Shown: one piece after another, positions 3,435-26,231 of the stretch
How positions within the stretch are numbered: the first letter of the stretch is position 1
Layout: each line of letters opens with the position of its first letter
Assembly: GCA_907165135.1 (NCBI GenBank)
Contig: OU015568.1
Coordinates: 5,146,001-5,210,000 of the forward strand
DNA: 64,000 nucleotides
Direction of reading: 5' to 3'
DNA from: Oikopleura dioica
Taxonomy: Eukaryota > Animalia > Chordata
Notes under the pieces: generated by a model
What the model saw: only the letters and a program-made list of their open reading frames with translations
What the model was told of the DNA's origin: nothing
Database searches by the model: none
Position numbers and translations under genes: made by a program

Positions 3435-6400
3435 ATGTCAGTTCCATCGCGAAGTCGACCCGGTGGCGAGCGAAATCGTCATCATCCCTACAACAACCAA
3501 AGCTCCTCTTCTTCGAAAAATGATAGAACCCAGTCATGTACGGTTTCAGTTGAAAATTTTTGATTTTTAAGAAATTTCTTCCATAGACGATACTTTCAAT
3601 AACGTCTCTTTTTAGCGGATTTGACGATGCATGAACGAACTTTTGAATATTGCCCAGACAAGCAGAAGAAATACAAGGCTACAGCCAAGATCGGACAGGT
3701 AAAAATGAAGAAATTTGTAGAAGCCATAAAGCGAAAGAAAGTTGTAAGAGAACGCTTAGAAAGAAAGGGTTTCGGTTGTATAATAAAGACGCGCTTTTTT
3801 TAAGGTGGTGGAAGTTTTCTAGCCCACTTGCGCCTTATAAACCCTAGAACACCATACCTTTTTAGAATCAGCAGGAAATTCTAAGAACTTTGACCGTTTT
3901 AGTTTTCGAAAATTCCACTTCCGGTCCGATTCTAGAGCCGGAAGTTGGCGAAATTTTGGAGTAATGGTAGTTGGTGACATATGAAATTAATGCTCAGAAG
4001 ATTTTGAGTCATCCTATAATCAAACCATCAGAAGAAACAGTCCCAAACGTGGTCAAACCGACCGGTAAAATGATGTAAAAAAGGCATAAATTGATGAAAT
4101 TTTTCACAATTTTAACCGGTTGGTTTGGCCGCGGTAGGGATTGATTCTTCTCTATATCGACAGGAAATCTTCTGGGGAGCAATTTGATAGGTCACACATT
4201 ACCTTAACTACTAAATTTCGTCAACTTCCGGCTCTAGAATCGGACCGGAAGTGGGATTTTCGAAAACTAAAACGGTCAAAGTTCTTAGAATTTCCTGCTG
4301 ATTCTAAAAAGGTATGGTGTTCTAGGGTTTATAAGGCGCAAGTGGGCTAGAAAACTTCCACCACCTTAAAAAAAGCGCGTCAAAATGAACTTCATTTCTT
4401 CAACCACATCTTCTTCACCACTCTCCTCTCATTTGTAGTCATTTAAAAGATATTTGATGAACAGTCGGCTATTATGAAAATAAAGCCGGGTTCGCAAAAT
4501 AAAAACTCTATTCTATGTCAAAATTCTCACGCAGCCGCTATTTCAGGGAACCTTTGGCGAAGTCTGGAAAGCAAAATGCACAGTAACTGGGCGAGTCGTC
4601 GCACTGAAAAAAGTTTTGATGGAAAACGAACGAGAAGGCTTCCCAATCACCGCTCTTCGCGAAATAAAAATCCTTCAAAAGCTCAAGAACGAAAATATCG
4701 TCGAGTTGATCGAAATCTGCAGAACGCGGCCAGATCATCGGACGAAAAAACGGCCAGAAATTCATCTAGTTTTCGAGTTTTGCGAACATGATTTGGCCGG
4801 ACTTCTCACGAACAAACAGGTTGAATTTGATTTTTCACTCCCTTTTCTTCATGAAGATTTTAGATGAATTTTTCGATCGGAGAAAAGAAAAAGGTCATCC
4901 AGCAGCTTTTCGAAGGACTGTATGTTATTCACAAGAACAAAATTCTTCACAGAGATATGAAGGCGGCGAATATTTTGATAAATCGAAAAGGGATCCTGAA
5001 GTTGGCTGATTTTGGTCTTGCCCGTCCTTTCAGGTTATTATACTGTTAATATTGATATTTATTACTATTGACTTGATGCTCATTGGCCTCAAAGAGTTAT
5101 AACTGCTAAAATCGATTCATTTTCTCGGTTAATTTTATCAATGTTGAACATAATTTCTTCAGCTGGATACTTCTTTCTGGTTTTCGTAAAATAAATTGAT
5201 CATCTTTTTAGCATACCAAAAGCAAGCCAGCCAAATAAATACACCAACAGAGTGGTAACCCTTTGGTACCGACCTCCCGAATTGCTCCTTGGTGAGCGAA
5301 ACTATGGCCCGGCGATTGATGTTTGGGGCGCGGGCTGCGTCATGGCAGAAATGTGGACAAGAACGCCGATTATGCAAGGAAAAGTGGAACAGGATCAACT
5401 TCAGAAGATTCAAAAACTTTGTGGTGGCATCAATCCGGAAACGTAAGAGCATTTTTAAATAATAAGGGAAGAGGCTTGTGGATTCAAGTTCAAGCAAGCT
5501 GCTTCTTCATTTTCTCGATAATAGTTGAGTATATTTTAAGATGGCCTGGTGTGGAGAAATTGGAACTGTATAAGAAACTTGTTCTACCAAACGAAGTCCG
5601 AAATTCCAGCCGAATCCTGACGCAGCGATTAAGAACGTATATGCCGGATAAAAATGCTTTAAATTTAATTGACCAGGTACTTTTGGAACTTTTGAAATTG
5701 CAGCACTTTCCCATGCAGCTATTAAACCGTACTGACGCGATAAACTACCGGTAGCCGAACTACGGGTGTCGCGGTTTTCTCTAATTGCCCCCTTAGTCAA
5801 CAGTTTTTATGCAATATAACCCCAAACTTCTCGCCGAGAAATCAAGCCAGAAAGTCAGCTTTTTCGAAGATAATTTGAAAAGCGATGAAGCTCTTCCAGT
5901 TCTTTCAATTCGTCCAGCTCGCCAAAGCGACTAGCTACTCCAACTGCGCTCCGCTAGAATCGCCAGAGAACGGCAAGCTCGAATGCTCGGGCCACCACTG
6001 CTCGGTGAAATGCGAGGAGGGATTTCTCCCAACTGGATTGAGGAAGATCAAGTGCCGCGGAAATCACAACAGCGGATATTCGTGGAAGAGAGAACTGGGC
6101 GGCTGCGGGACGTGTCAAGATCTCGCTCCTGGATCTGGTATTGTCAAGAGCTGCGACATCTCCAAGCACAACAAGCGTCGATGCCTGTTTTCGTGCGCCA
6201 ATGGCGATCCGATGAACAACGGTCAGACGCAGGTTGATGTTTTGTCCGCCGTTTGCCAGTGTCCCAAGTCCGATGTTTTTCCATTCACTTGTGATTGGAA
6301 AGGAAAAGGCGATTGGAAAAGCGCACTGAATCAAACAACTCTTGATAGCTTCACTTGTGGCAGTTTGACACCAACAACGACTACCACAACTACAACAACA

Positions 6401-8371
6401 GCTTCTCCAACATCATCAAGCTCAACAGCAGCAAGTTCTACCACTGCTGCTAGCTCAACTACAACAAAATCAACAACTACCACTTCTTCGACCACCGCAG
6501 CTTCCTCTGCCGCTACTTCTGCCTCCACAACAGCCTCGACCACGGCTTCTACCACTCCCTCTTCTTCAGCTGGCGTCGACAAAACTGCCTGTGTCCAAAA
6601 ACTTACCGAATACGGGCACAAGGACGCAGCCGAAGCTTGCGATGCTATCATCCGTCACAATCAATACCGAGCGAATCATAACTCCCCTGCTCTTGGAATT
6701 CCTTCCAAAGCCCTTTGTGATGGTGCTCAAGAATGGGCGAACATCCAGGCAGAGAGACGAACAGGAAGCATGGAGCACGCGTCAAGGGATCAGCTCGGAA
6801 GTAAGTCAAAAACAGTTTTGAATGCAATCCTATGATAAATCCTCCTTTAGGTCTCGGTGAAAACATGGCCTGGTCAAGCGTGAGCTCTGGCTACTCCATG
6901 TCTGACGGAACCCAAGCATGGCAATCAGAAGATGTCAACTACGACTTCTCTAACCACCAAGAATGTACTGCCGATAGCTGTCCCTCTTGCTCGAAGGGAC
7001 CGAACAATGCATGGTACGATTGTGGCCACTTCACTCAAAACATCTGGAAGAGTACCAAGTTCGTTTGCGTCGCCAAAGCAACAAATGAGGCTGGAACTTT
7101 CATTGTCGCTCGATACGAAAACGGAGGAAACATGCAGGGTGCTTACTTGGCGAATATTGATGGCAACGGGCCCAAGAATGGTCAATTCGTCGGAAAACCA
7201 TCCAGCACTGGAGCTATAACTACGGCTTCTGCTGCCTCCACGACCGCATCTACAGCCGCCTCTACCACCCCTACAACTTCCTCTTCTTCAGGCGGCGTCG
7301 ACAGAGCTGCATGCGTCCAAAAGTTGACCGAATACGGACACAAAGATGCAGCAGAAGCTTGCGATGCCATCATCCGTCACAATCAATACCGTGCAAATCA
7401 CAACTCTCCTGCTCTCGGAATTCCATCAAAAGCCCTCTGTGATGGCGCTCAAGAATGGGCGAACACCCAGGCGGCAAGAAAAACGGGAAGTATGAAGCAC
7501 GCGTCGATAGATCAGCTCGGAAGTAAGTCAAAAATGCACCAGCGGAATTACTCAGAAAATCGAGAAGCCGCTGGCGGCTCCTTTGAGTCTCAAACTCAAA
7601 ATATTGTCAGTCTTATCGGCTGATTCTAGCCATAGGAGCTTTTTCAAATCTTTCTTTAGGTCTCGGTGAAAACATGGCCTGGTCTAGCGTTAGCTCCGGA
7701 TATTCCATGTCCGATGGTACCAAAGCCTGGCAATCGGAAGACGTCTACTACGACTTCTCGAACCATCAAGAATGCACCGCCGGCAGCTGTCCTTCCTGCT
7801 CTAAAGGCCCAAACAAATCGTGGTACGACTGTGGCCACTTCACTCAAAACATCTGGAAGAGTACCAAGTTTGTTTGCGTCGCAAAAGCAGCTAACGAAGC
7901 GGGAACTTTCATCGTCGCTCGATATGAAAACGGTGGAAACATGCAGGGAGCGTACTTGGCTAATGTCGATGGCAACGGGCCCAAGAATGGTCAATTTGTT
8001 GGAAAACAATAATAAATTCTGCGTTTCTCTGTCCCAATTATCTAATAAAAAAGTCCCTTATTTTCAAAAATGTGTTTTTTTTTCTTGTTTCTTGTGGCAA
8101 AAGCCTCACTTTTATTTCGAGCTTTTTAATTCCCTTTCTTTAGCTTCTTACCTTGAAACCCGAAAATCGAATCGACTGCGACACAGCGCTAAATCATGAC
8201 TTCTTCTGGACAGATCCGATGCCAGTTTCTCTCGAAGGCACTTTGAGCAAACTCTCGTCCTCGATGTTCGAGTACCTGACTACCAATCCGCAGCGAAATC
8301 ATCACCAGCCAGCTCAAGCTTCAAGGCAAAATAACGCATCCCATGGCGGCATGATCGACCGTGTTTACTGA
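3435..8371 (+). CDS. CDK9: CDK9 paralogue A (P-TEFb kinase), multi-exon
   Basis: KIGQ|[75 protein letters not shown]; last exon 8144-8371 [41 protein letters not shown] introns include 3699-4546, 5443-5540 and 5677-8143. Confidence 0.95.
3788..4381. mobile_element. Palindromic MITE (family A, copy 1) in a CDK9-A intron
   Basis: About 200 bp near-perfect terminal inverted repeats (gacgcgc..taagg / cctta..gcgcgtc), loosely palindromic core, 3-bp flanks aaa/aaa; second copy at 23977-24566. Confidence 0.9.
5885..8012 (+). CDS. Secreted protein: sushi/CCP-like plus Cys-rich module, Thr/Ser linker, two tandem CAP (SCP/PR-1) domains; nested in a CDK9-A intron
   Basis: Signal peptide [15 protein letters not shown]; [21 protein letters not shown]; [29 protein letters not shown] and [11 protein letters not shown] each occur twice. 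In-frame GT-AG introns 6801-6850 and 7523-7659; stop 8010-8012 overlapping aataaa. Confidence 0.9.
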
Positions 8372-8708
8372 GATATACTGTGCCCCTAATCTACTTAATC
8401 ACCTTTTCTGCTTACATTTCTATTTTACTATTCTCTGTCCATCAGCTAGAAGTCTCCCTCAAAGATCGGTGATTTAACAAGTCATTTTGCCTGATTATCT
8501 TTATATCTCAAAGCCGCACGCGGCTTTTTGTGATTATCATCGAAGATTGTTTACTTCACTAGTCTTCTAAATATAATTTCAACGGTTTAAATTTTTGAAA
8601 TACTCCCAAAAACTTGTCACAGATAAATACAACATCAATCTATTCAAAATCGAAATCCATCAACCCTTTGTAAGTTCAGAACAAGGAAATCGCCCCCTGG
8701 TTCAGAAA

Positions 8709-10740
8709 ATGTCGATTGCCAATCAAGTGATGCCATACCGAACTCGCCCATCAAGACCTCACAACAACCACCATCATCAGCATCAGCAACAGAATCTTCC
8801 TTATGCCAGACCGCCTCAGAAAGAAACCCGATTCCCAGATGGAAACGCTCATCGCCAGAATGAGAAAAGTCGCCCTCCCTTCGTTCACAAGTTGAAATCC
8901 CCTGATCCAACGAAGTCAGGTAAAGCGCCCTTGTTCTTATGTCTGAGAGACGTAGCTCAATATTGCCGGAAAATCTCTGGAATATGGAGTCAATCAATTG
9001 TTTTCATCAATTTTTTCACCTACAAAAAATTGATTTTTTGACGCTAATAGAGATGAGTTACGATCCCAGTTTCAACCGTCAAAATCCCAACATAATGGGC
9101 GATTTGATGAAGGATATCACGGATTTTATGAAAATGAGAGATCGGAGTAATTCCACGGAAAAACGACAGAGAGAGGCAGATCATAGAATCCCGATTCCTG
9201 AAAAACAGAAGCCGAAAAAGAGACATGTTCATCATACAGGTCTCTTATTTGGCGCTAGAATCTGCTATGAGGAAGTTTTTTGACAGTCATCGACATTTTT
9301 GACATCGATAGACATTTCAGGACATCTACAGACATCCAAAGACATCATGAACATGATTTTCTAATCGACTTTTTAAGATAACCCCTCTATGTTCGACCGC
9401 GATTTCCCCCACTGCCCCGATCGTCGACAAAAGTACATGACTATCGCGAAAATTGGCCAAGGAACATTTGGCGAAGTCTTTAAAGCGAAGAACCAAGAAA
9501 CAGGTCAAGTTGTAGCGCTGAAGAAAATCCTTATCGAAAAGGATCAAGCTTCGGCGGGTTTTCCAGTCACTGCCTTGCGAGAAATCAAAATTCTCAATAA
9601 TTTGAAACGAGTCCCGACAGACAACATCGTCCAGGTACTTTTAAACCTCCGAAAAAATGAGTTGAAAATGCGTTTCAAGCTGATCGAAATCTGCAGAACC
9701 CGCTTCGATCCAAAAGAAGGGCGCCGACCAGAGATACATTTGGTCTTTGAGTTCTGCGATCATGACTTGGCCGGCCTTCTTCAAAACAAAAAGGTTTAGA
9801 AAGTCCATTCTTTGATTCTTGATACCATCTCGAGGTCAATTTTTCAATGGGAGAGAAGAAGAAGCTCTCCTACATGTTGTTCGAAGGCCTTTTCGCGCTG
9901 CACAAGAACAAAATTCTTCATCGAGATATTAAATCGGCGAATATTTTGATCACGAAAAAGGGTGTGCTTAAGATTGCTGATTTTGGACTTGCTCGCCCTT
10001 TCAGGTGAAAAATTAACAATTGCTCGATTATTTCAAAAATCAATGTTGACTAATTTTCTTTCTAGTTACCCAAAGCAAGGAAAAGAAAACCGCTACACGA
10101 ACCGAGTCGTGACTCTTTGGTACCGACCGCCAGAGCTGCTCCTTGGCGAGCGCAACTACGGCCCAGCAATTGACGTCTGGGGCGCTGGCTGCGTCATGGC
10201 CGAGCTCTGGACGCGAACTCCCCTGCTTCAAGGGAGCAACGAGCAGGATATGCTCGAGAAGATCCAGAGATTTGTTGGAGGCATCAACACTGAATCCTGG
10301 CCCGGCGTCGAGAAATACCCAAGCTTCAGAAACGCGCTTCAGGGAAAACCGATCACGAAGGAGAAAAGTAAAATATTCAAGAATCTTGGCCGGTACTTGA
10401 GAGATGAAAATGGACTGAAACTTGTTGAACAGGTGAATAGGGAAAAGAAACCTATTCAGACAGTTGTTTAGCTCTTGACCCTGAAGCCTGAGAATAGATG
10501 GGACTGTGACACAGTTCTGGATCACGATTTCTTCTGGACTGATCCCATGCCTTGTTCACTAGAAGGTACCTACCGGAAAGTCAATTGAAAATCTCCATTC
10601 ACAAATTCCTAGAAACACTTAGCAAACTTCACAAATCGCTCTTCGACTTCACAGAATCACTTCCTCAGCAAATGAAACACGCCCAGCATTCCGCCGCGAA
10701 AAAGCCCGCCTTTACCGGACTTGTCGATCGAGTCTTTTGA
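8709..10740 (+). CDS. CDK9: CDK9 paralogue B, with long N-terminal extension and divergent C-helix
   Basis: [77 protein letters not shown]-terminus GLVDRVF*; ATG preceded by gttcag. Confidence 0.9.
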
Positions 10741-23778: not shown

Positions 23779-26231
23779 ATGACGACGACGGAAAGATTGA
23801 GTGATGCTCAGATGAGAAGATTTGTTGCGACATTGACAGAGACTGTATCCAGGTTGACGGACAGTATCAAGACGCTAGAATTCAAGGTAAGGAGCCTTTT
23901 AAAAGCTTTTAAATAACGTCAAACTGCGAATAGACCCTAAAGAGTCAGTAAACCAGATCAAGCGGTCGTTGACATAGACGTGCTTTTTTTAAGGTTAAGG
24001 AAGTTATTTCTCTTCGTACCTCTTTTTAGACCGGGAACACCATACATATTTGGAATCAGCAGGAAATTTTAAGAACTTTGACCGTTTTAGTTTCTCAAAT
24101 TTCCACTTCCGGTCCGATTCTAGAGCCGGAAGTTGACGAAATTTTGAGTTTGGGCAACTTGTGACCTATCAAATTGATGCTCAGAAGATTTTGAGTCATC
24201 ACATCTACAAATTATTCAAAAAGACCGTCCCAACCGCGGACAAACCGACCGGCAAAACAAGGAAAAAAGGCATAAATTTGTGATTTTTCTTTCAGTTTTT
24301 AGCGGATGATTTGACCGCGGTCGGCATTGATTCTTATCTCAGATGATAGGAAATCTTCTGAGCATCAATTTGATAGGTCACAAGTTGCCCAAACTCAAAA
24401 ATTTCGTCAACTTCCGGCTCTAGAATCGGACCGGAAGTGGAAATTTGAGAAACTAAAACGGTCAAAGTTCTTAAAATTTCCTGCTGATTCCAAATATGTA
24501 TGGTGTTCCCGGTCTAAAAAGAGGTACGAAGAGAAATAACTTCCTTAACCTTAAAAAAAGCACGTCATACGCTTTGATCAGATTTAGTGATCCGTGACAG
24601 TGCACTTTTTAATTCAGTCCCAATAAAGATCTTTATGTAACAGATGCTAATCGTTTTATGATCCCTCTGTAAGTATTTAACCTCAAACTTCCTTACTCTG
24701 AGCCACAAAATCTCAAAAGGTTTTTTCCCTTTTCAATCTATGCACGATTTCGTCGGGCCCTCCATAATGCAGAAATACACGATCGTCAAGATTCTTGAGG
24801 AATGAGAGCCGGAAGAAAACAAGTAAGAAAAAGCCGCCCAGCTGCAGAAGTGGCGAATCGATTCTTGTTTTCTTCTGGCCGTCGTTTCCGCCATCGCTTT
24901 TTGCTGCATCCTGTCTACAGTGTCGAATTTCAGACTGTTTTAAGATGGCCCCGTATTATTCACTTCTAAAATGATTCCAAACGTTCGGTGATCCCACAAC
25001 TATTGCCATTTTGTAACTATTGTGAAGTTTACAACTACTGTAAGGCTTACAGTGTAAGCTGCTACTTTTTATATTCTTGAATAAAATAATTCTTACAGCA
25101 ATCTCCTCAATGAATGCTTTAGGTCTCCGCATCAGAAAACAACTACATTTCCGTCCTAAAAAAGCTCAACGAGGTCGAAAATGAAAACAAAGATCTCTCC
25201 AAAAAACTAGTCCAGCAAAATGAGCAAATCTTTCATCTCGAGGTACTCCTACTTTTTCTTTTTGGTATGTTATTTGCCTGCACTAGAATTCGTTGAAGCA
25301 GCAATCTCGCATATCAGAAGAGCACACTCAGACGATCCAAAGGAGGATCATGGATCTGGAAGGCGATAATAAGCAAATCGAAAAACGGGTAGAGCAAACG
25401 GCAAGGAGCGAAGGACAACGGGCTCTTGAAACATCAGATTCTATTGCCAAAGGTTGATTTCAGTCCAACTGTAACTTACAGTTGCATATCAGAAAACGAA
25501 GTTTTTCGGATAAAGCGCATGTTTCATGATTCAAGCCATTCAAGGCATTTTTGAAGCTAAATTTCTTCATAAATTCTCTTGATTTCTCCCTGATTCTTGC
25601 ATGAACCCATTTAAAAGCTGAGTCGAAAATAACCGGAAGCGCAGAACTTCAGCTGCTGCAAACCAGACTCAATTCCCTCGCCGAAGAAATGCGACTGAGC
25701 ATCGAGAATTCCAAGCGCTGGGCAGATCAGGAGCGAGAACGAACAAATCGTGAAATGAATGACAACATCAGAGAAGCTTTGGCCACTATCGAGAGGGACA
25801 GCAAAGATCTCAAAGTAAGACTCTCGTTGCTTTTGGCTTTTTTATAAATTATAATTTTCTTTAGAATTTCGTCCATGAAACAGCGGAAGACTTGAAACAG
25901 ACGACCACTCTTTCGGACCAAGAATGCAAAAGACTGGACGATAAAGTGAAGCAGATCATCAAACGAATCACTGAAAACGAAAGCAGAAGCCGATCCAAGC
26001 ATTCACAGCACGTTGGCGAAATCAAGAACACTAGAAGTGAGGTAGGCCAATAGCTCATTATTCGTATACTTATCCCTCTCCAAGATTGAGCATGGATTTG
26101 ACAGTCTTCAATCGACTGTTTCTGGACTCCAAAAACTCCTTGAAGGCAAAATCCAGCTGTACAAGGACGATTACGACCGCCAAGTGGCAGAAATGAAGAA
26201 GCTCATTGTTCTGTCTGACACCAGCGTTTAA
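23779..26231 (+). CDS. Coiled-coil protein, FAM81-like
   Basis: Heptad exons; C-terminal EHGFDSLQSTVSGLQKLLEGKIQLYKDD resembles the recalled FAM81 tail (GF..I..S..SL.Q.LEAKM.L). Long first intron holds MITE A2. Family call from memory only. Confidence 0.55.
23977..24566. mobile_element. Palindromic MITE (family A, copy 2), intronic
   Basis: Long TIRs gacgtgc..taagg / cctta..gcacgtc, 3-bp TSD ata/ata, core colinear with 3788-4381. Confidence 0.9.

Follow-up and report, generated by a model that had tools for sequence, protein, structure and literature searches.

A CAP-domain gene lies on the same strand within intron 6 of the CDK9-A gene of Oikopleura dioica

Introduction

Can a gene be expressed in full when a complete second gene, transcribed in the same direction and equipped with its own poly(A) signals, lies inside one of its introns? 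This question is raised by a stretch of 64,000 nucleotides of DNA from the planktonic tunicate Oikopleura dioica (the window, within which all positions are numbered), in which a CAP-domain gene lies wholly within intron 6 of CDK9-A. The original prediction held that nested genes are mostly antisense, a fair statement in view of the human figures: about 63% of human nested genes lie on the opposite strand and about 37% on the same strand (PMC3192792), so that the majority stands, but a same-strand share of over a third is not exceptional. Compact genomes, that of O. dioica among them, have also been described as featuring intron-nested genes (bioRxiv 10.64898/2025.12.04.692336). Here we describe the locus and conclude that the nesting is genuine and of a type already known; the CDK9-A case is a well-documented ordinary example, and it reveals no new mechanism.

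Results

CDK9-A is an intact gene of seven exons on the forward strand, with 1221 nt of coding sequence (407 codons); this total, like that of the nested gene given below, was computed from coordinates and not from joined sequences. Its identity as CDK9 rests on the PITALRE motif, on catalytic motifs that are all intact, and on CDK9 being the closest kinase. Exon 1 (3435-3537) is proposed to begin with an ATG at 3435, following tttatag/a, and ends in phase 1 at t/gtacgg (slashes mark splice boundaries); its frame and phase fit exon 2, and its predicted Ser/His/Asn-rich N-terminus is like that of CDK9-B, the tandem paralog. Exon 2 (3616-3698, phase 0, ending in KIGQ) was detected by a tblastn search of the window with the N-terminal exon of CDK9-B (E 3e-7). 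The 5' part of CDK9-A was found to lie further upstream than first apparent, tblastn with the CDK9-B N-terminus having led to both 3435-3537 and 3616-3698. Intron 2 (3699-4546, 848 nt) has no counterpart in CDK9-B and holds a foldback MITE of about 600 nt, whose arms (3788-4004 and 4165-4381) form a 217-nt inverted repeat that is 93% complementary; the MITE family numbers at least 40 copies genome-wide.

The kinase domain continues through exon 3 (4547-4819), with the GTFGEV glycine loop, the VALKK lysine and PITALRE (Pfam Pkinase 5.5e-14), exon 4 (4864-5033), with the HRDMKAAN catalytic loop and DFG (Pfam Pkinase 6.3e-17), and exon 5 (5212-5442), which carries the T-loop and whose best solved relatives were CDK9 chains (E 9e-38 vs 2e-24 for CDK12). 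Exon 6 (5541-5676) ends with NALNLIDQ in phase 0 and is collinear with the GLKLVEQ end in CDK9-B, and the last exon (8144-8371) ends with MIDRVY, stop codon included, and matched only CDK9 chains (residues 295-357). The host thus shares with CDK9, the PITALRE kinase of P-TEFb, its eponymous motif, the T-loop threonine context and the CDK9-specific C-terminal segment; it differs in that O. dioica has two tandem paralogs with different intron sets, and only copy A houses another gene.

Intron 6 of CDK9-A (5677-8143, forward strand, 2467 nt, GT...AG) opens with a GT at 5677-5678, directly after the LIDQ that closes exon 6 at 5676, and ends with an AG at 8142-8143, after which coding restarts with LLTLKPENR at 8144. 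The start, introns, stop and poly(A) signals of the nested gene all lie between these limits and on the strand of the host. The nested gene fills nearly the whole 2.5 kb; the other introns at the locus measure 39-180 nt, except for the 848-nt intron 2. CDK9-B (8709-10740, forward strand, about 65% amino-acid identity to CDK9-A) starts 340 nt downstream of CDK9-A, and these two are the only CDK9 copies in the genome. The same intron is 39 nt long in CDK9-B (10433-10471) and falls at the same codon boundary and in the same phase (LIDQ/LLTLKPENR in A, LVEQ/LLTLKPENR in B). Intron 6 of CDK9-A is old, being common to both paralogs. The exons that flank the nested gene belong to one host gene, being collinear with CDK9-B and with human CDK9 up to and from residue 295, and in an A-type CDK9 protein from another larvacean (P0005) the sequences of the two exons are contiguous. 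The original prediction had placed the break in the kinase at LIDQ (5677) and its resumption at LLTLKPE (8144), had given the CDK9-B intron as 39 bp, and had described the nested gene as intact, with its own introns, a stop, an aataaa at 8011-8016 and a weak tataa at 5815; each of these features was recovered at the position foreseen.

The nested gene has three exons on the forward strand and 1938 nt of coding sequence (646 codons). Exon 1 (5885-6800) encodes a signal-peptide-like N-terminus, Cys-rich sushi-like modules, a Thr/Ser-rich linker of mucin-like composition and the N-terminal half of CAP domain 1; exon 2 (6851-7522) encodes the C-terminal half of CAP1, a linker and the N-terminal half of CAP2; and exon 3 (7660-8012) encodes the C-terminal half of CAP2 and ends with the stop codon TAA (8010-8012). 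Both introns (6801-6850, 50 nt; 7523-7659, 137 nt) are GT-AG and in phase 1. Exon 2 matched the Pfam CAP family (PF00188) with 31.8 bits (cut-off 21.1), even with the domain interrupted by introns, and an intron-free relative (P0002) scored 37.1 bits, covering positions 3-115 of the 117 in the profile. The two CAP domains arose by tandem duplication within the gene (copies at 6506-7136 and 7228-7945, 81-86% identical in nucleotides), and all four CAP signature motifs could be read in the translations of both, including HNQYR for CAP3 and GENMAW for CAP4; the CAP2 motif has Ala where Cys is usual. By eye, the N-terminus resembles a signal peptide, and the product is predicted to be secreted. 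Residues 21-60 matched Sushi/CCP (PF00084) at 16.8 bits (E 0.009), under the cut-off of 20.7, with a Cys/Pro/Gly/Trp spacing that appears sushi-like by eye.

Like other members of the CAP superfamily (CRISP, antigen 5 and PR-1; GAPR-1/GLIPR2, Pry1 and the hookworm ASPs), the nested gene product has PF00188, the HNxxR, GEN and GHFTQxxW motifs and a secretory-type N-terminus, and a two-CAP architecture is also found in hookworm ASP-1 (PDB 3nt8), a weak match. It differs from these proteins in the sushi-like Cys modules at its N-terminus, in its long Thr/Ser linker and in a CAP2 motif without the usual Cys. The nearest solved structures were GAPR-1, PR-1 and Pry1, and the relatives found were larvacean only. 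Paralogs of the same architecture occur in the genome, those of exon 1 at 42% identity.

The position of the CAP intron is common to the nested gene and to paralogs on another chromosome, where 45 nt separate the match to exon 1 from the match to exon 2. We considered whether the nested gene could be a retrocopy and rejected this origin because of the shared intron position. Intron 6 would instead have grown by insertion of the gene at the DNA level, introns included.

The 3' part of the locus could be compared with a wild lineage. Three marine-metagenome contigs (L030, L031 and L032), each from a different assembly and one of them from Tara Oceans (PRJEB4352), aligned at 92.7% over positions 7647-8965, that is, at about 7% divergence. 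The order of exon 3 of the nested gene, AATAAA, the host acceptor, the last exon of CDK9-A and the start of CDK9-B was kept in all three, with the same spacing. Because three independent contigs agree in this, the 3' junction is not misassembled, which disposes of the misassembly that the original prediction had named as an alternative on this side; as to synteny, which it had proposed to check, the 3' half of the arrangement is retained in the wild lineage. A further contig, L027, was the only one to cover the start of the nested gene, and its flanks are unrelated, so that conserved nesting is seen on the 3' side only.

The same contigs allowed selection to be estimated. The protein encoded by exon 3 of the nested gene was 99% identical on the three contigs, and its dN/dS against the wild relative was 0.026. 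For the last exon of CDK9-A, dN/dS against L030 was 0.054, an estimate that draws on six substitutions only (5 synonymous and 1 non-synonymous; p about 0.003 for at least 5 of 6 synonymous, by a binomial worked by hand). Coding identity to the wild relative was 97% (97.3% in the last exon of CDK9-A) vs 82-88% in non-coding stretches. These comparisons indicate that the nested gene and its host are both under purifying selection, as read from exon 3 of the former and the last exon of the latter. The Pfam CAP match above threshold, the paralogs of the same architecture and the dN/dS of exon 3 together argue that the nested gene is not a chance open reading frame. Since an exon of the nested gene and the last exon of the host are both under selection, we infer that splicing of the host from 5676 to 8144, across the nested gene, almost certainly persists. 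Both genes look functional.

Discussion

We think it probable, weighing the sequence evidence as a whole, that the nested gene arrived by DNA-level insertion and is an independent transcription unit, that the host is spliced across it, and that the conflict between the two is limited by separate expression. The nested gene would be transcribed from its own promoter within the 208 nt that separate its ATG from the host donor, where a TATAA (5815-5819, forward strand, 66 nt upstream of the ATG) is a candidate core-promoter element and where a conserved 45-nt leader precedes the ATG; the distance from the TATAA to TCAGC, the best initiator-like sequence, is about 40 nt, which is beyond the textbook spacing. 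Transcripts of the nested gene would end at the AATAAA signals that it carries at 8011 and 8044. Transcription of the host would run on through the nested gene, the pre-mRNA would then be spliced, and some host transcripts would be lost at the nested poly(A) site during read-through, as a cost and not as a designed switch. The conflict is probably limited in that CDK9-A and the nested gene, by appearance the source of a tissue-specific secreted product, may be active in different cells or stages. In CDK9-A, as in CDK9-B, a T-rich AG stands directly before the ATG, a trait of trans-spliced O. dioica genes.

In holding a complete gene of unrelated function in a single host intron, the locus resembles the same-strand intron-nested genes cataloged in human, Drosophila and C. 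elegans. It differs from them in that the nested gene makes up nearly all of its host intron in a locus of otherwise short introns, in that the poly(A) signals of the nested gene lie 95-130 nt from the host acceptor and in that the organism uses spliced-leader trans-splicing. It also resembles the operons of O. dioica in its tight same-strand packing, in an AATAAA that closely precedes the following 3' splice site and in the single spliced leader of the species; however, the nested gene is flanked on both sides by exons of a single gene, and its poly(A) signal is followed by a host exon and not by a new cistron.

[quoted passage not shown] The single spliced leader of O. dioica serves at least 39% of genes and also resolves operons (PMC7986045). 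Within intron 6, the ATG of the nested gene is preceded, at a distance of 15 nt, by an AG in a pyrimidine-rich context (5868-5869, ctttttcgaag/), a weak candidate for a spliced-leader acceptor, and L027, otherwise unrelated, matches the last 45 nt ahead of the ATG (5840-5884) at all but one base. A loose 500-bp same-strand criterion (PMC11067885) would even make one operon of CDK9-A, the nested gene and CDK9-B. However, intercistronic distances in O. dioica operons are at most 60 bp (PMC7986045), and here the ATG lies 208 nt past the host donor with no gene 3' end upstream. None of the AGs in 5677-5884 is of the TTTNAG form, whereas a T-rich tract adjoins the AG in 11 of the locus's 13 confirmed acceptors. 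An acceptor with a donor upstream would be expected to splice in cis, a rule established in nematode outrons that we take to apply to tunicates, and joining 5676 to 5870 would bring a stop after two codons and destroy the host message. Moreover, one precursor could give either the nested mRNA or the host mRNA, never both. We therefore regard release by trans-splicing as unlikely.

A second alternative, the switch suggested in the original prediction, concerns the other end of the intron, namely that the poly(A) signals of the nested gene are used or suppressed in a regulated manner that sets the amount of full-length CDK9-A relative to CDK9-B. Two AATAAA signals (8011-8016 and 8044-8049, forward strand) precede the host acceptor by 95-130 nt, the first overlapping the TAA stop codon, and both were kept in L030 and L032 together with the acceptor. 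The U/GU-rich stretch past the signals overlaps the polypyrimidine tract of the host, so that cleavage and splicing must compete physically, and premature polyadenylation of hosts by nested genes and intronic elements is known (PMC3192792). But the geometry alone makes such competition automatic, and a selected function is not needed to explain it. Nothing in the sequence points to regulation. We found no structure that would hide the poly(A) signal (the region is unstructured, z +0.96), and the ends of intron 6 form no helix, their pairing energy (-33.7 kcal/mol) being that of shuffled sequences (-33.4 +/- 4.7 kcal/mol). Nor is there extra conservation around the signals; positions 8013-8143 were the least conserved segment of the alignment, at 82%. 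Finally, the truncated product would lack everything from human CDK9 residue 295 on, subdomain XI of the kinase as well as the tail; it would be a null, and the arrangement could work as an off-switch only. A regulated switch is thus improbable in our judgment. The claim that either a selected competition between poly(A) site and 3' splice site turns CDK9-A off and leaves CDK9-B alone for P-TEFb, or the CAP mRNA is released by spliced-leader trans-splicing, strikes us as decidedly unlikely; if such release did take place, the locus would be an operon folded inside an intron.

It is very unlikely, furthermore, that the insertion split CDK9-A, leaving exons 1-6 as the source of a truncated product or as a pseudogene and 8144-8371 as an orphan remnant. 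Certainly, an intron of 2.5 kb that contains a poly(A) signal severely handicaps a gene in a locus whose introns mostly measure 39-180 nt. Yet the last exon is intact to its conserved DRVY end and has kept its 97.3% identity and its excess of synonymous changes next to non-coding flanks at 82-88%, the catalytic motifs of exons 3-5 are complete, and both splice sites of the intron are canonical (donor at 5677, acceptor at 8143), the acceptor being the most pyrimidine-rich of the locus (10 of 10). That an assembly misjoin put the nested gene into the intron has nothing specific in its favor and is hardly credible at all, given the order and spacing shared by the three short-read metagenome assemblies and the 5' part of the intron (5677-5884), which has no match elsewhere in the genome and is continuous with host exon 6.

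An independently transcribed gene over which the host is spliced thus remains the reading that we prefer. The locus is a clean example of gene nesting under the extreme compaction and rapid rearrangement of an animal genome, in which an ancient intron of the 39-nt class, in a core transcription kinase, took in a whole three-exon gene, with both genes still under selection. The un-nested paralog CDK9-B, so close downstream, provides a built-in control. This makes the locus convenient for studying how the host message escapes a poly(A) signal that lies on its own strand some 100 nt ahead of the acceptor, and also whether organisms with trans-splicing treat such a poly(A) conflict differently.

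The nested gene and the intron that holds it

The genome searched was the O. dioica assembly OKI2018_I69_1.0 of the Okinawa lineage (19 contigs; length 64,281,565 bases, PMC11067885, Table 1), in which the window occupies C1:5,146,001-5,210,000, and spliced models of both CDK9-A and the nested gene were searched one exon at a time. The exon boundaries of the host agreed with the original prediction: CDK9-A exon 6 ends with NALNLIDQ at 5676 and is followed by GT, and the acceptor AG at 8142-8143 is followed by a stretch of 27 residues. The counterpart intron in the tandem paralog CDK9-B (10433-10471) is 39 nt long and lies at the same codon boundary and in the same phase. The two genes thus have in common the intron that in CDK9-A spans 5677-8143 and holds a whole gene on the same strand.

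This nested gene, which we call the lodger, has three exons on the + strand (5885-6800, 6851-7522 and 7660-8012) that add up to 1938 coding nt, or 646 codons, and are separated by two phase-1 introns (50 nt and 137 nt) with GT-AG ends. The signals predicted at its two ends were also found, a TATAA at 5815-5819 and a stop codon (TAA, 8010-8012) overlapping an AATAAA at 8011-8016; a second AATAAA lies beyond the stop at 8044.

CDK9-A and its tandem paralog

CDK9-A at first appeared to lack its N-terminus because no ATG was found in its reading frame upstream of GTFGEV (4547). A tblastn search with the N-terminal exon of CDK9-B located the missing exon at 3616-3698, beyond an 848-nt intron; it ends in phase 0 with a 19-residue stretch closing in KIGQ, which rules out that CDK9-A is a 5'-truncated pseudogene. 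When the proposed first exon (3435-3537, + strand) is counted, the seven exons of CDK9-A total 1221 nt, or 407 codons. The PITALRE motif, the VALKK lysine, the HRDMKAAN catalytic loop, the DFG motif and the T-loop are all intact. By far the best solved relatives were CDK9 chains (E 9e-38, vs 2e-24 for CDK12), and the last exon matched only CDK9, at residues 295-357. CDK9-A and CDK9-B are about 65% identical, and the genome holds no further CDK9 copies.

The two genes (3435-8371 and 8709-10740) share three introns and differ at four intron positions: introns between KIGQ and GTFG and between INPET and WPG occur only in CDK9-A, and those between NIVQ and LIEI and between SLE and TLS only in CDK9-B. 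The pair is a compact case of intron turnover following duplication. The 848-nt intron of CDK9-A (3699-4546, between KIGQ and GTFG) holds a foldback MITE of about 600 nt at about 3785-4385, whose arms of 217 nt are 93% complementary. The genome carries at least 40 members of this MITE family, one of them elsewhere in the window at about 23976-24567. This intron could be young or enlarged by the transposable element.

We also noticed a T-rich AG before both start codons, tttatag followed by aATG in CDK9-A and ggttcag followed by aaaATG in CDK9-B. No canonical AATAAA was found in the 337 nt from the CDK9-A stop to the CDK9-B ATG. As read from these sequences, CDK9-A and CDK9-B may form an operon resolved by the spliced leader. 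Our literature search found no paper on the CDK9 paralogs of O. dioica.

Family and origin of the lodger

The N-terminus of the lodger protein resembles a signal peptide and is followed by Cys-rich modules with sushi-like spacing (Pfam Sushi, 16.8 bits, under the cut-off), a long Thr/Ser-rich linker and two CAP domains, of which exon 2 alone scored 31.8 bits on Pfam PF00188. The four CAP signature motifs, among them HNQYR and GENMAW, were found in both domains, and the CAP units form an internal tandem duplication with 81-86% nucleotide identity. For P0002, an intron-free larvacean homolog, the nearest solved structures were GAPR-1, PR-1, Pry1 and the hookworm ASPs.

Paralogs with the same architecture, 42-60% identical to the lodger, form a tandem cluster on another chromosome (C5:3,169,400-3,175,300, minus strand; loci L004-L012, L014, L015 and L018), and in one of these paralogs an intron interrupts the CAP domain where it does in the lodger. 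The sushi-like N-terminal module by itself matched about 30 places in the genome. Because of this cluster and these matches, the genes combining sushi-like modules and CAP domains look like a secreted-protein family expanded in larvaceans, for whose CAP proteins our literature search found no paper.

A retrocopy origin of the lodger was ruled out by its introns, one of which has a position common to distant paralogs. Recent copying from elsewhere in the genome was ruled out as well, given that even the best paralog shares only 42-60% identity with it, and is also countered by the 5' part of the host intron being unique in the genome. The distance of the paralogs and the shared CAP intron position indicate that the lodger is an old member of its family that was relocated as DNA rather than retrocopied or recently duplicated.

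Conservation in wild relatives

When lodger exon 3 was used as the query of a word search, a protein 99% identical to it turned up on three metagenome contigs. Each belongs to a different assembly, among them Tara Oceans PRJEB4352. These contigs align to 7647-8965 with 92.7% identity and keep, with order and spacing unchanged, the last lodger exon with its stop, the two AATAAA signals, the acceptor of the host, the whole last exon of CDK9-A and, past the spacer, CDK9-B exon 1. The possibility raised earlier that the region was misassembled does not hold for the 3' junction, because contigs from different assemblies carry the same order.

Identity to the contigs was 97% in coding and 82-88% in non-coding sequence. 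The dN/dS of lodger exon 3 was 0.026 (9 synonymous changes and 1 non-synonymous), and that of the last CDK9-A exon was 0.054 (5 and 1, respectively). The last CDK9-A exon thus remains under selection for its coding function, and this is difficult to account for if the host transcript does not join exon 6 to it across the lodger. A search with the same host exon found three larvacean fragments: P0005, a CDK9 of the A type in which both junction exons are contiguous, P0006, a genomic read-through fragment, and P0072.

The metagenome contigs carry a lodger with one CAP domain, made of the N-terminal half of CAP1, intron 1 and the C-terminal half of CAP2 (window 6506-8012, contig L030:3-692), with the switch point near 6851-6900 / 7660-7710. 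The two CAP repeat units of the window diverge from each other far more than orthologs do between lineages, so this form looks like a loss by unequal crossing-over between the repeat units, or a segregating structural variant.

Word searches with lodger exon 1 found only the protein P0001 and the metagenome contig L027, the sole contig covering the lodger start. L027 (723 nt) matches the window at 5840-6162 only, with 93.5% identity over a 45-nt leader, the signal peptide and the first sushi-like module; the leader, which precedes the lodger ATG, has a single difference. Similarity breaks sharply at both ends, and no match to the flanks of L027 was found in this genome. The contig may be chimeric, or it may represent a shuffled exon or a rearranged ortholog. 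A scan of JGI metagenome contigs for the 5' junction of the lodger gave no match.

How the lodger and its host may be expressed

The best-supported reading of these sequences is that the lodger would be its own transcription unit and that the host would be spliced across it. The lodger promoter would lie within the 208 nt from the host donor to the lodger ATG, the lodger transcript would end at its own poly(A) signals, and the host pre-mRNA would be spliced from exon 6 to the last exon. The lodger poly(A) site lies about 100 nt upstream of the host acceptor, and competition between the two is a physical necessity. The original prediction saw a possible switch in the use of this site; a host transcript truncated there would be null, lacking kinase subdomain XI.

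A spliced leader could still act on a transcript initiated at the lodger itself: trans-splicing through a pyrimidine-rich AG 15 nt before its ATG is possible from the sequence. Operon-like release of the lodger mRNA from the CDK9-A precursor, as had also been proposed, fits poorly. O. dioica has operons and a single spliced leader, on at least 39% of genes, in a very compact genome with short introns (PMC7986045). The lodger starts 208 nt past a donor site, whereas intercistronic distances in O. dioica operons are at most 60 nt (PMC7986045), and an acceptor upstream of its ATG would be expected to be cis-spliced to the host donor, leading to an immediate stop. The TTTNAG form typical of most confirmed acceptors at the locus is not seen in any AG upstream of the lodger ATG, in contrast to the ATGs of CDK9-A and CDK9-B, each of which is preceded by a TTTNAG-like site.

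Searches for special RNA structures gave negative results. A helix joining the intron ends (RNAduplex, 5677-5884 vs 8013-8143) was no better than dinucleotide shuffles, and a hairpin masking the poly(A) signals was rejected, as the fold of 7985-8150 was unstructured (z +0.96). The segment from the lodger stop to the host acceptor was the least conserved of the metagenome alignment. A chimeric CDK9-CAP isoform was ruled out by the in-frame TAA at 5817-5819 in the lodger frame and by the early stops that arise when either lodger exon 2 or lodger exon 3 (phase 1) is spliced onto host exon 6 (phase 0).

Same-strand nesting in a compact genome

About 63% of human nested genes lie on the opposite strand (PMC3192792), leaving about 37% on the same strand, and intron-nested genes are among the listed features of compact genomes such as that of O. 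dioica (bioRxiv 10.64898/2025.12.04.692336). Same-strand nested genes are thus already known, and the CDK9-A locus adds a well-supported case, whose usefulness lies in the un-nested CDK9-B that adjoins it as a control.
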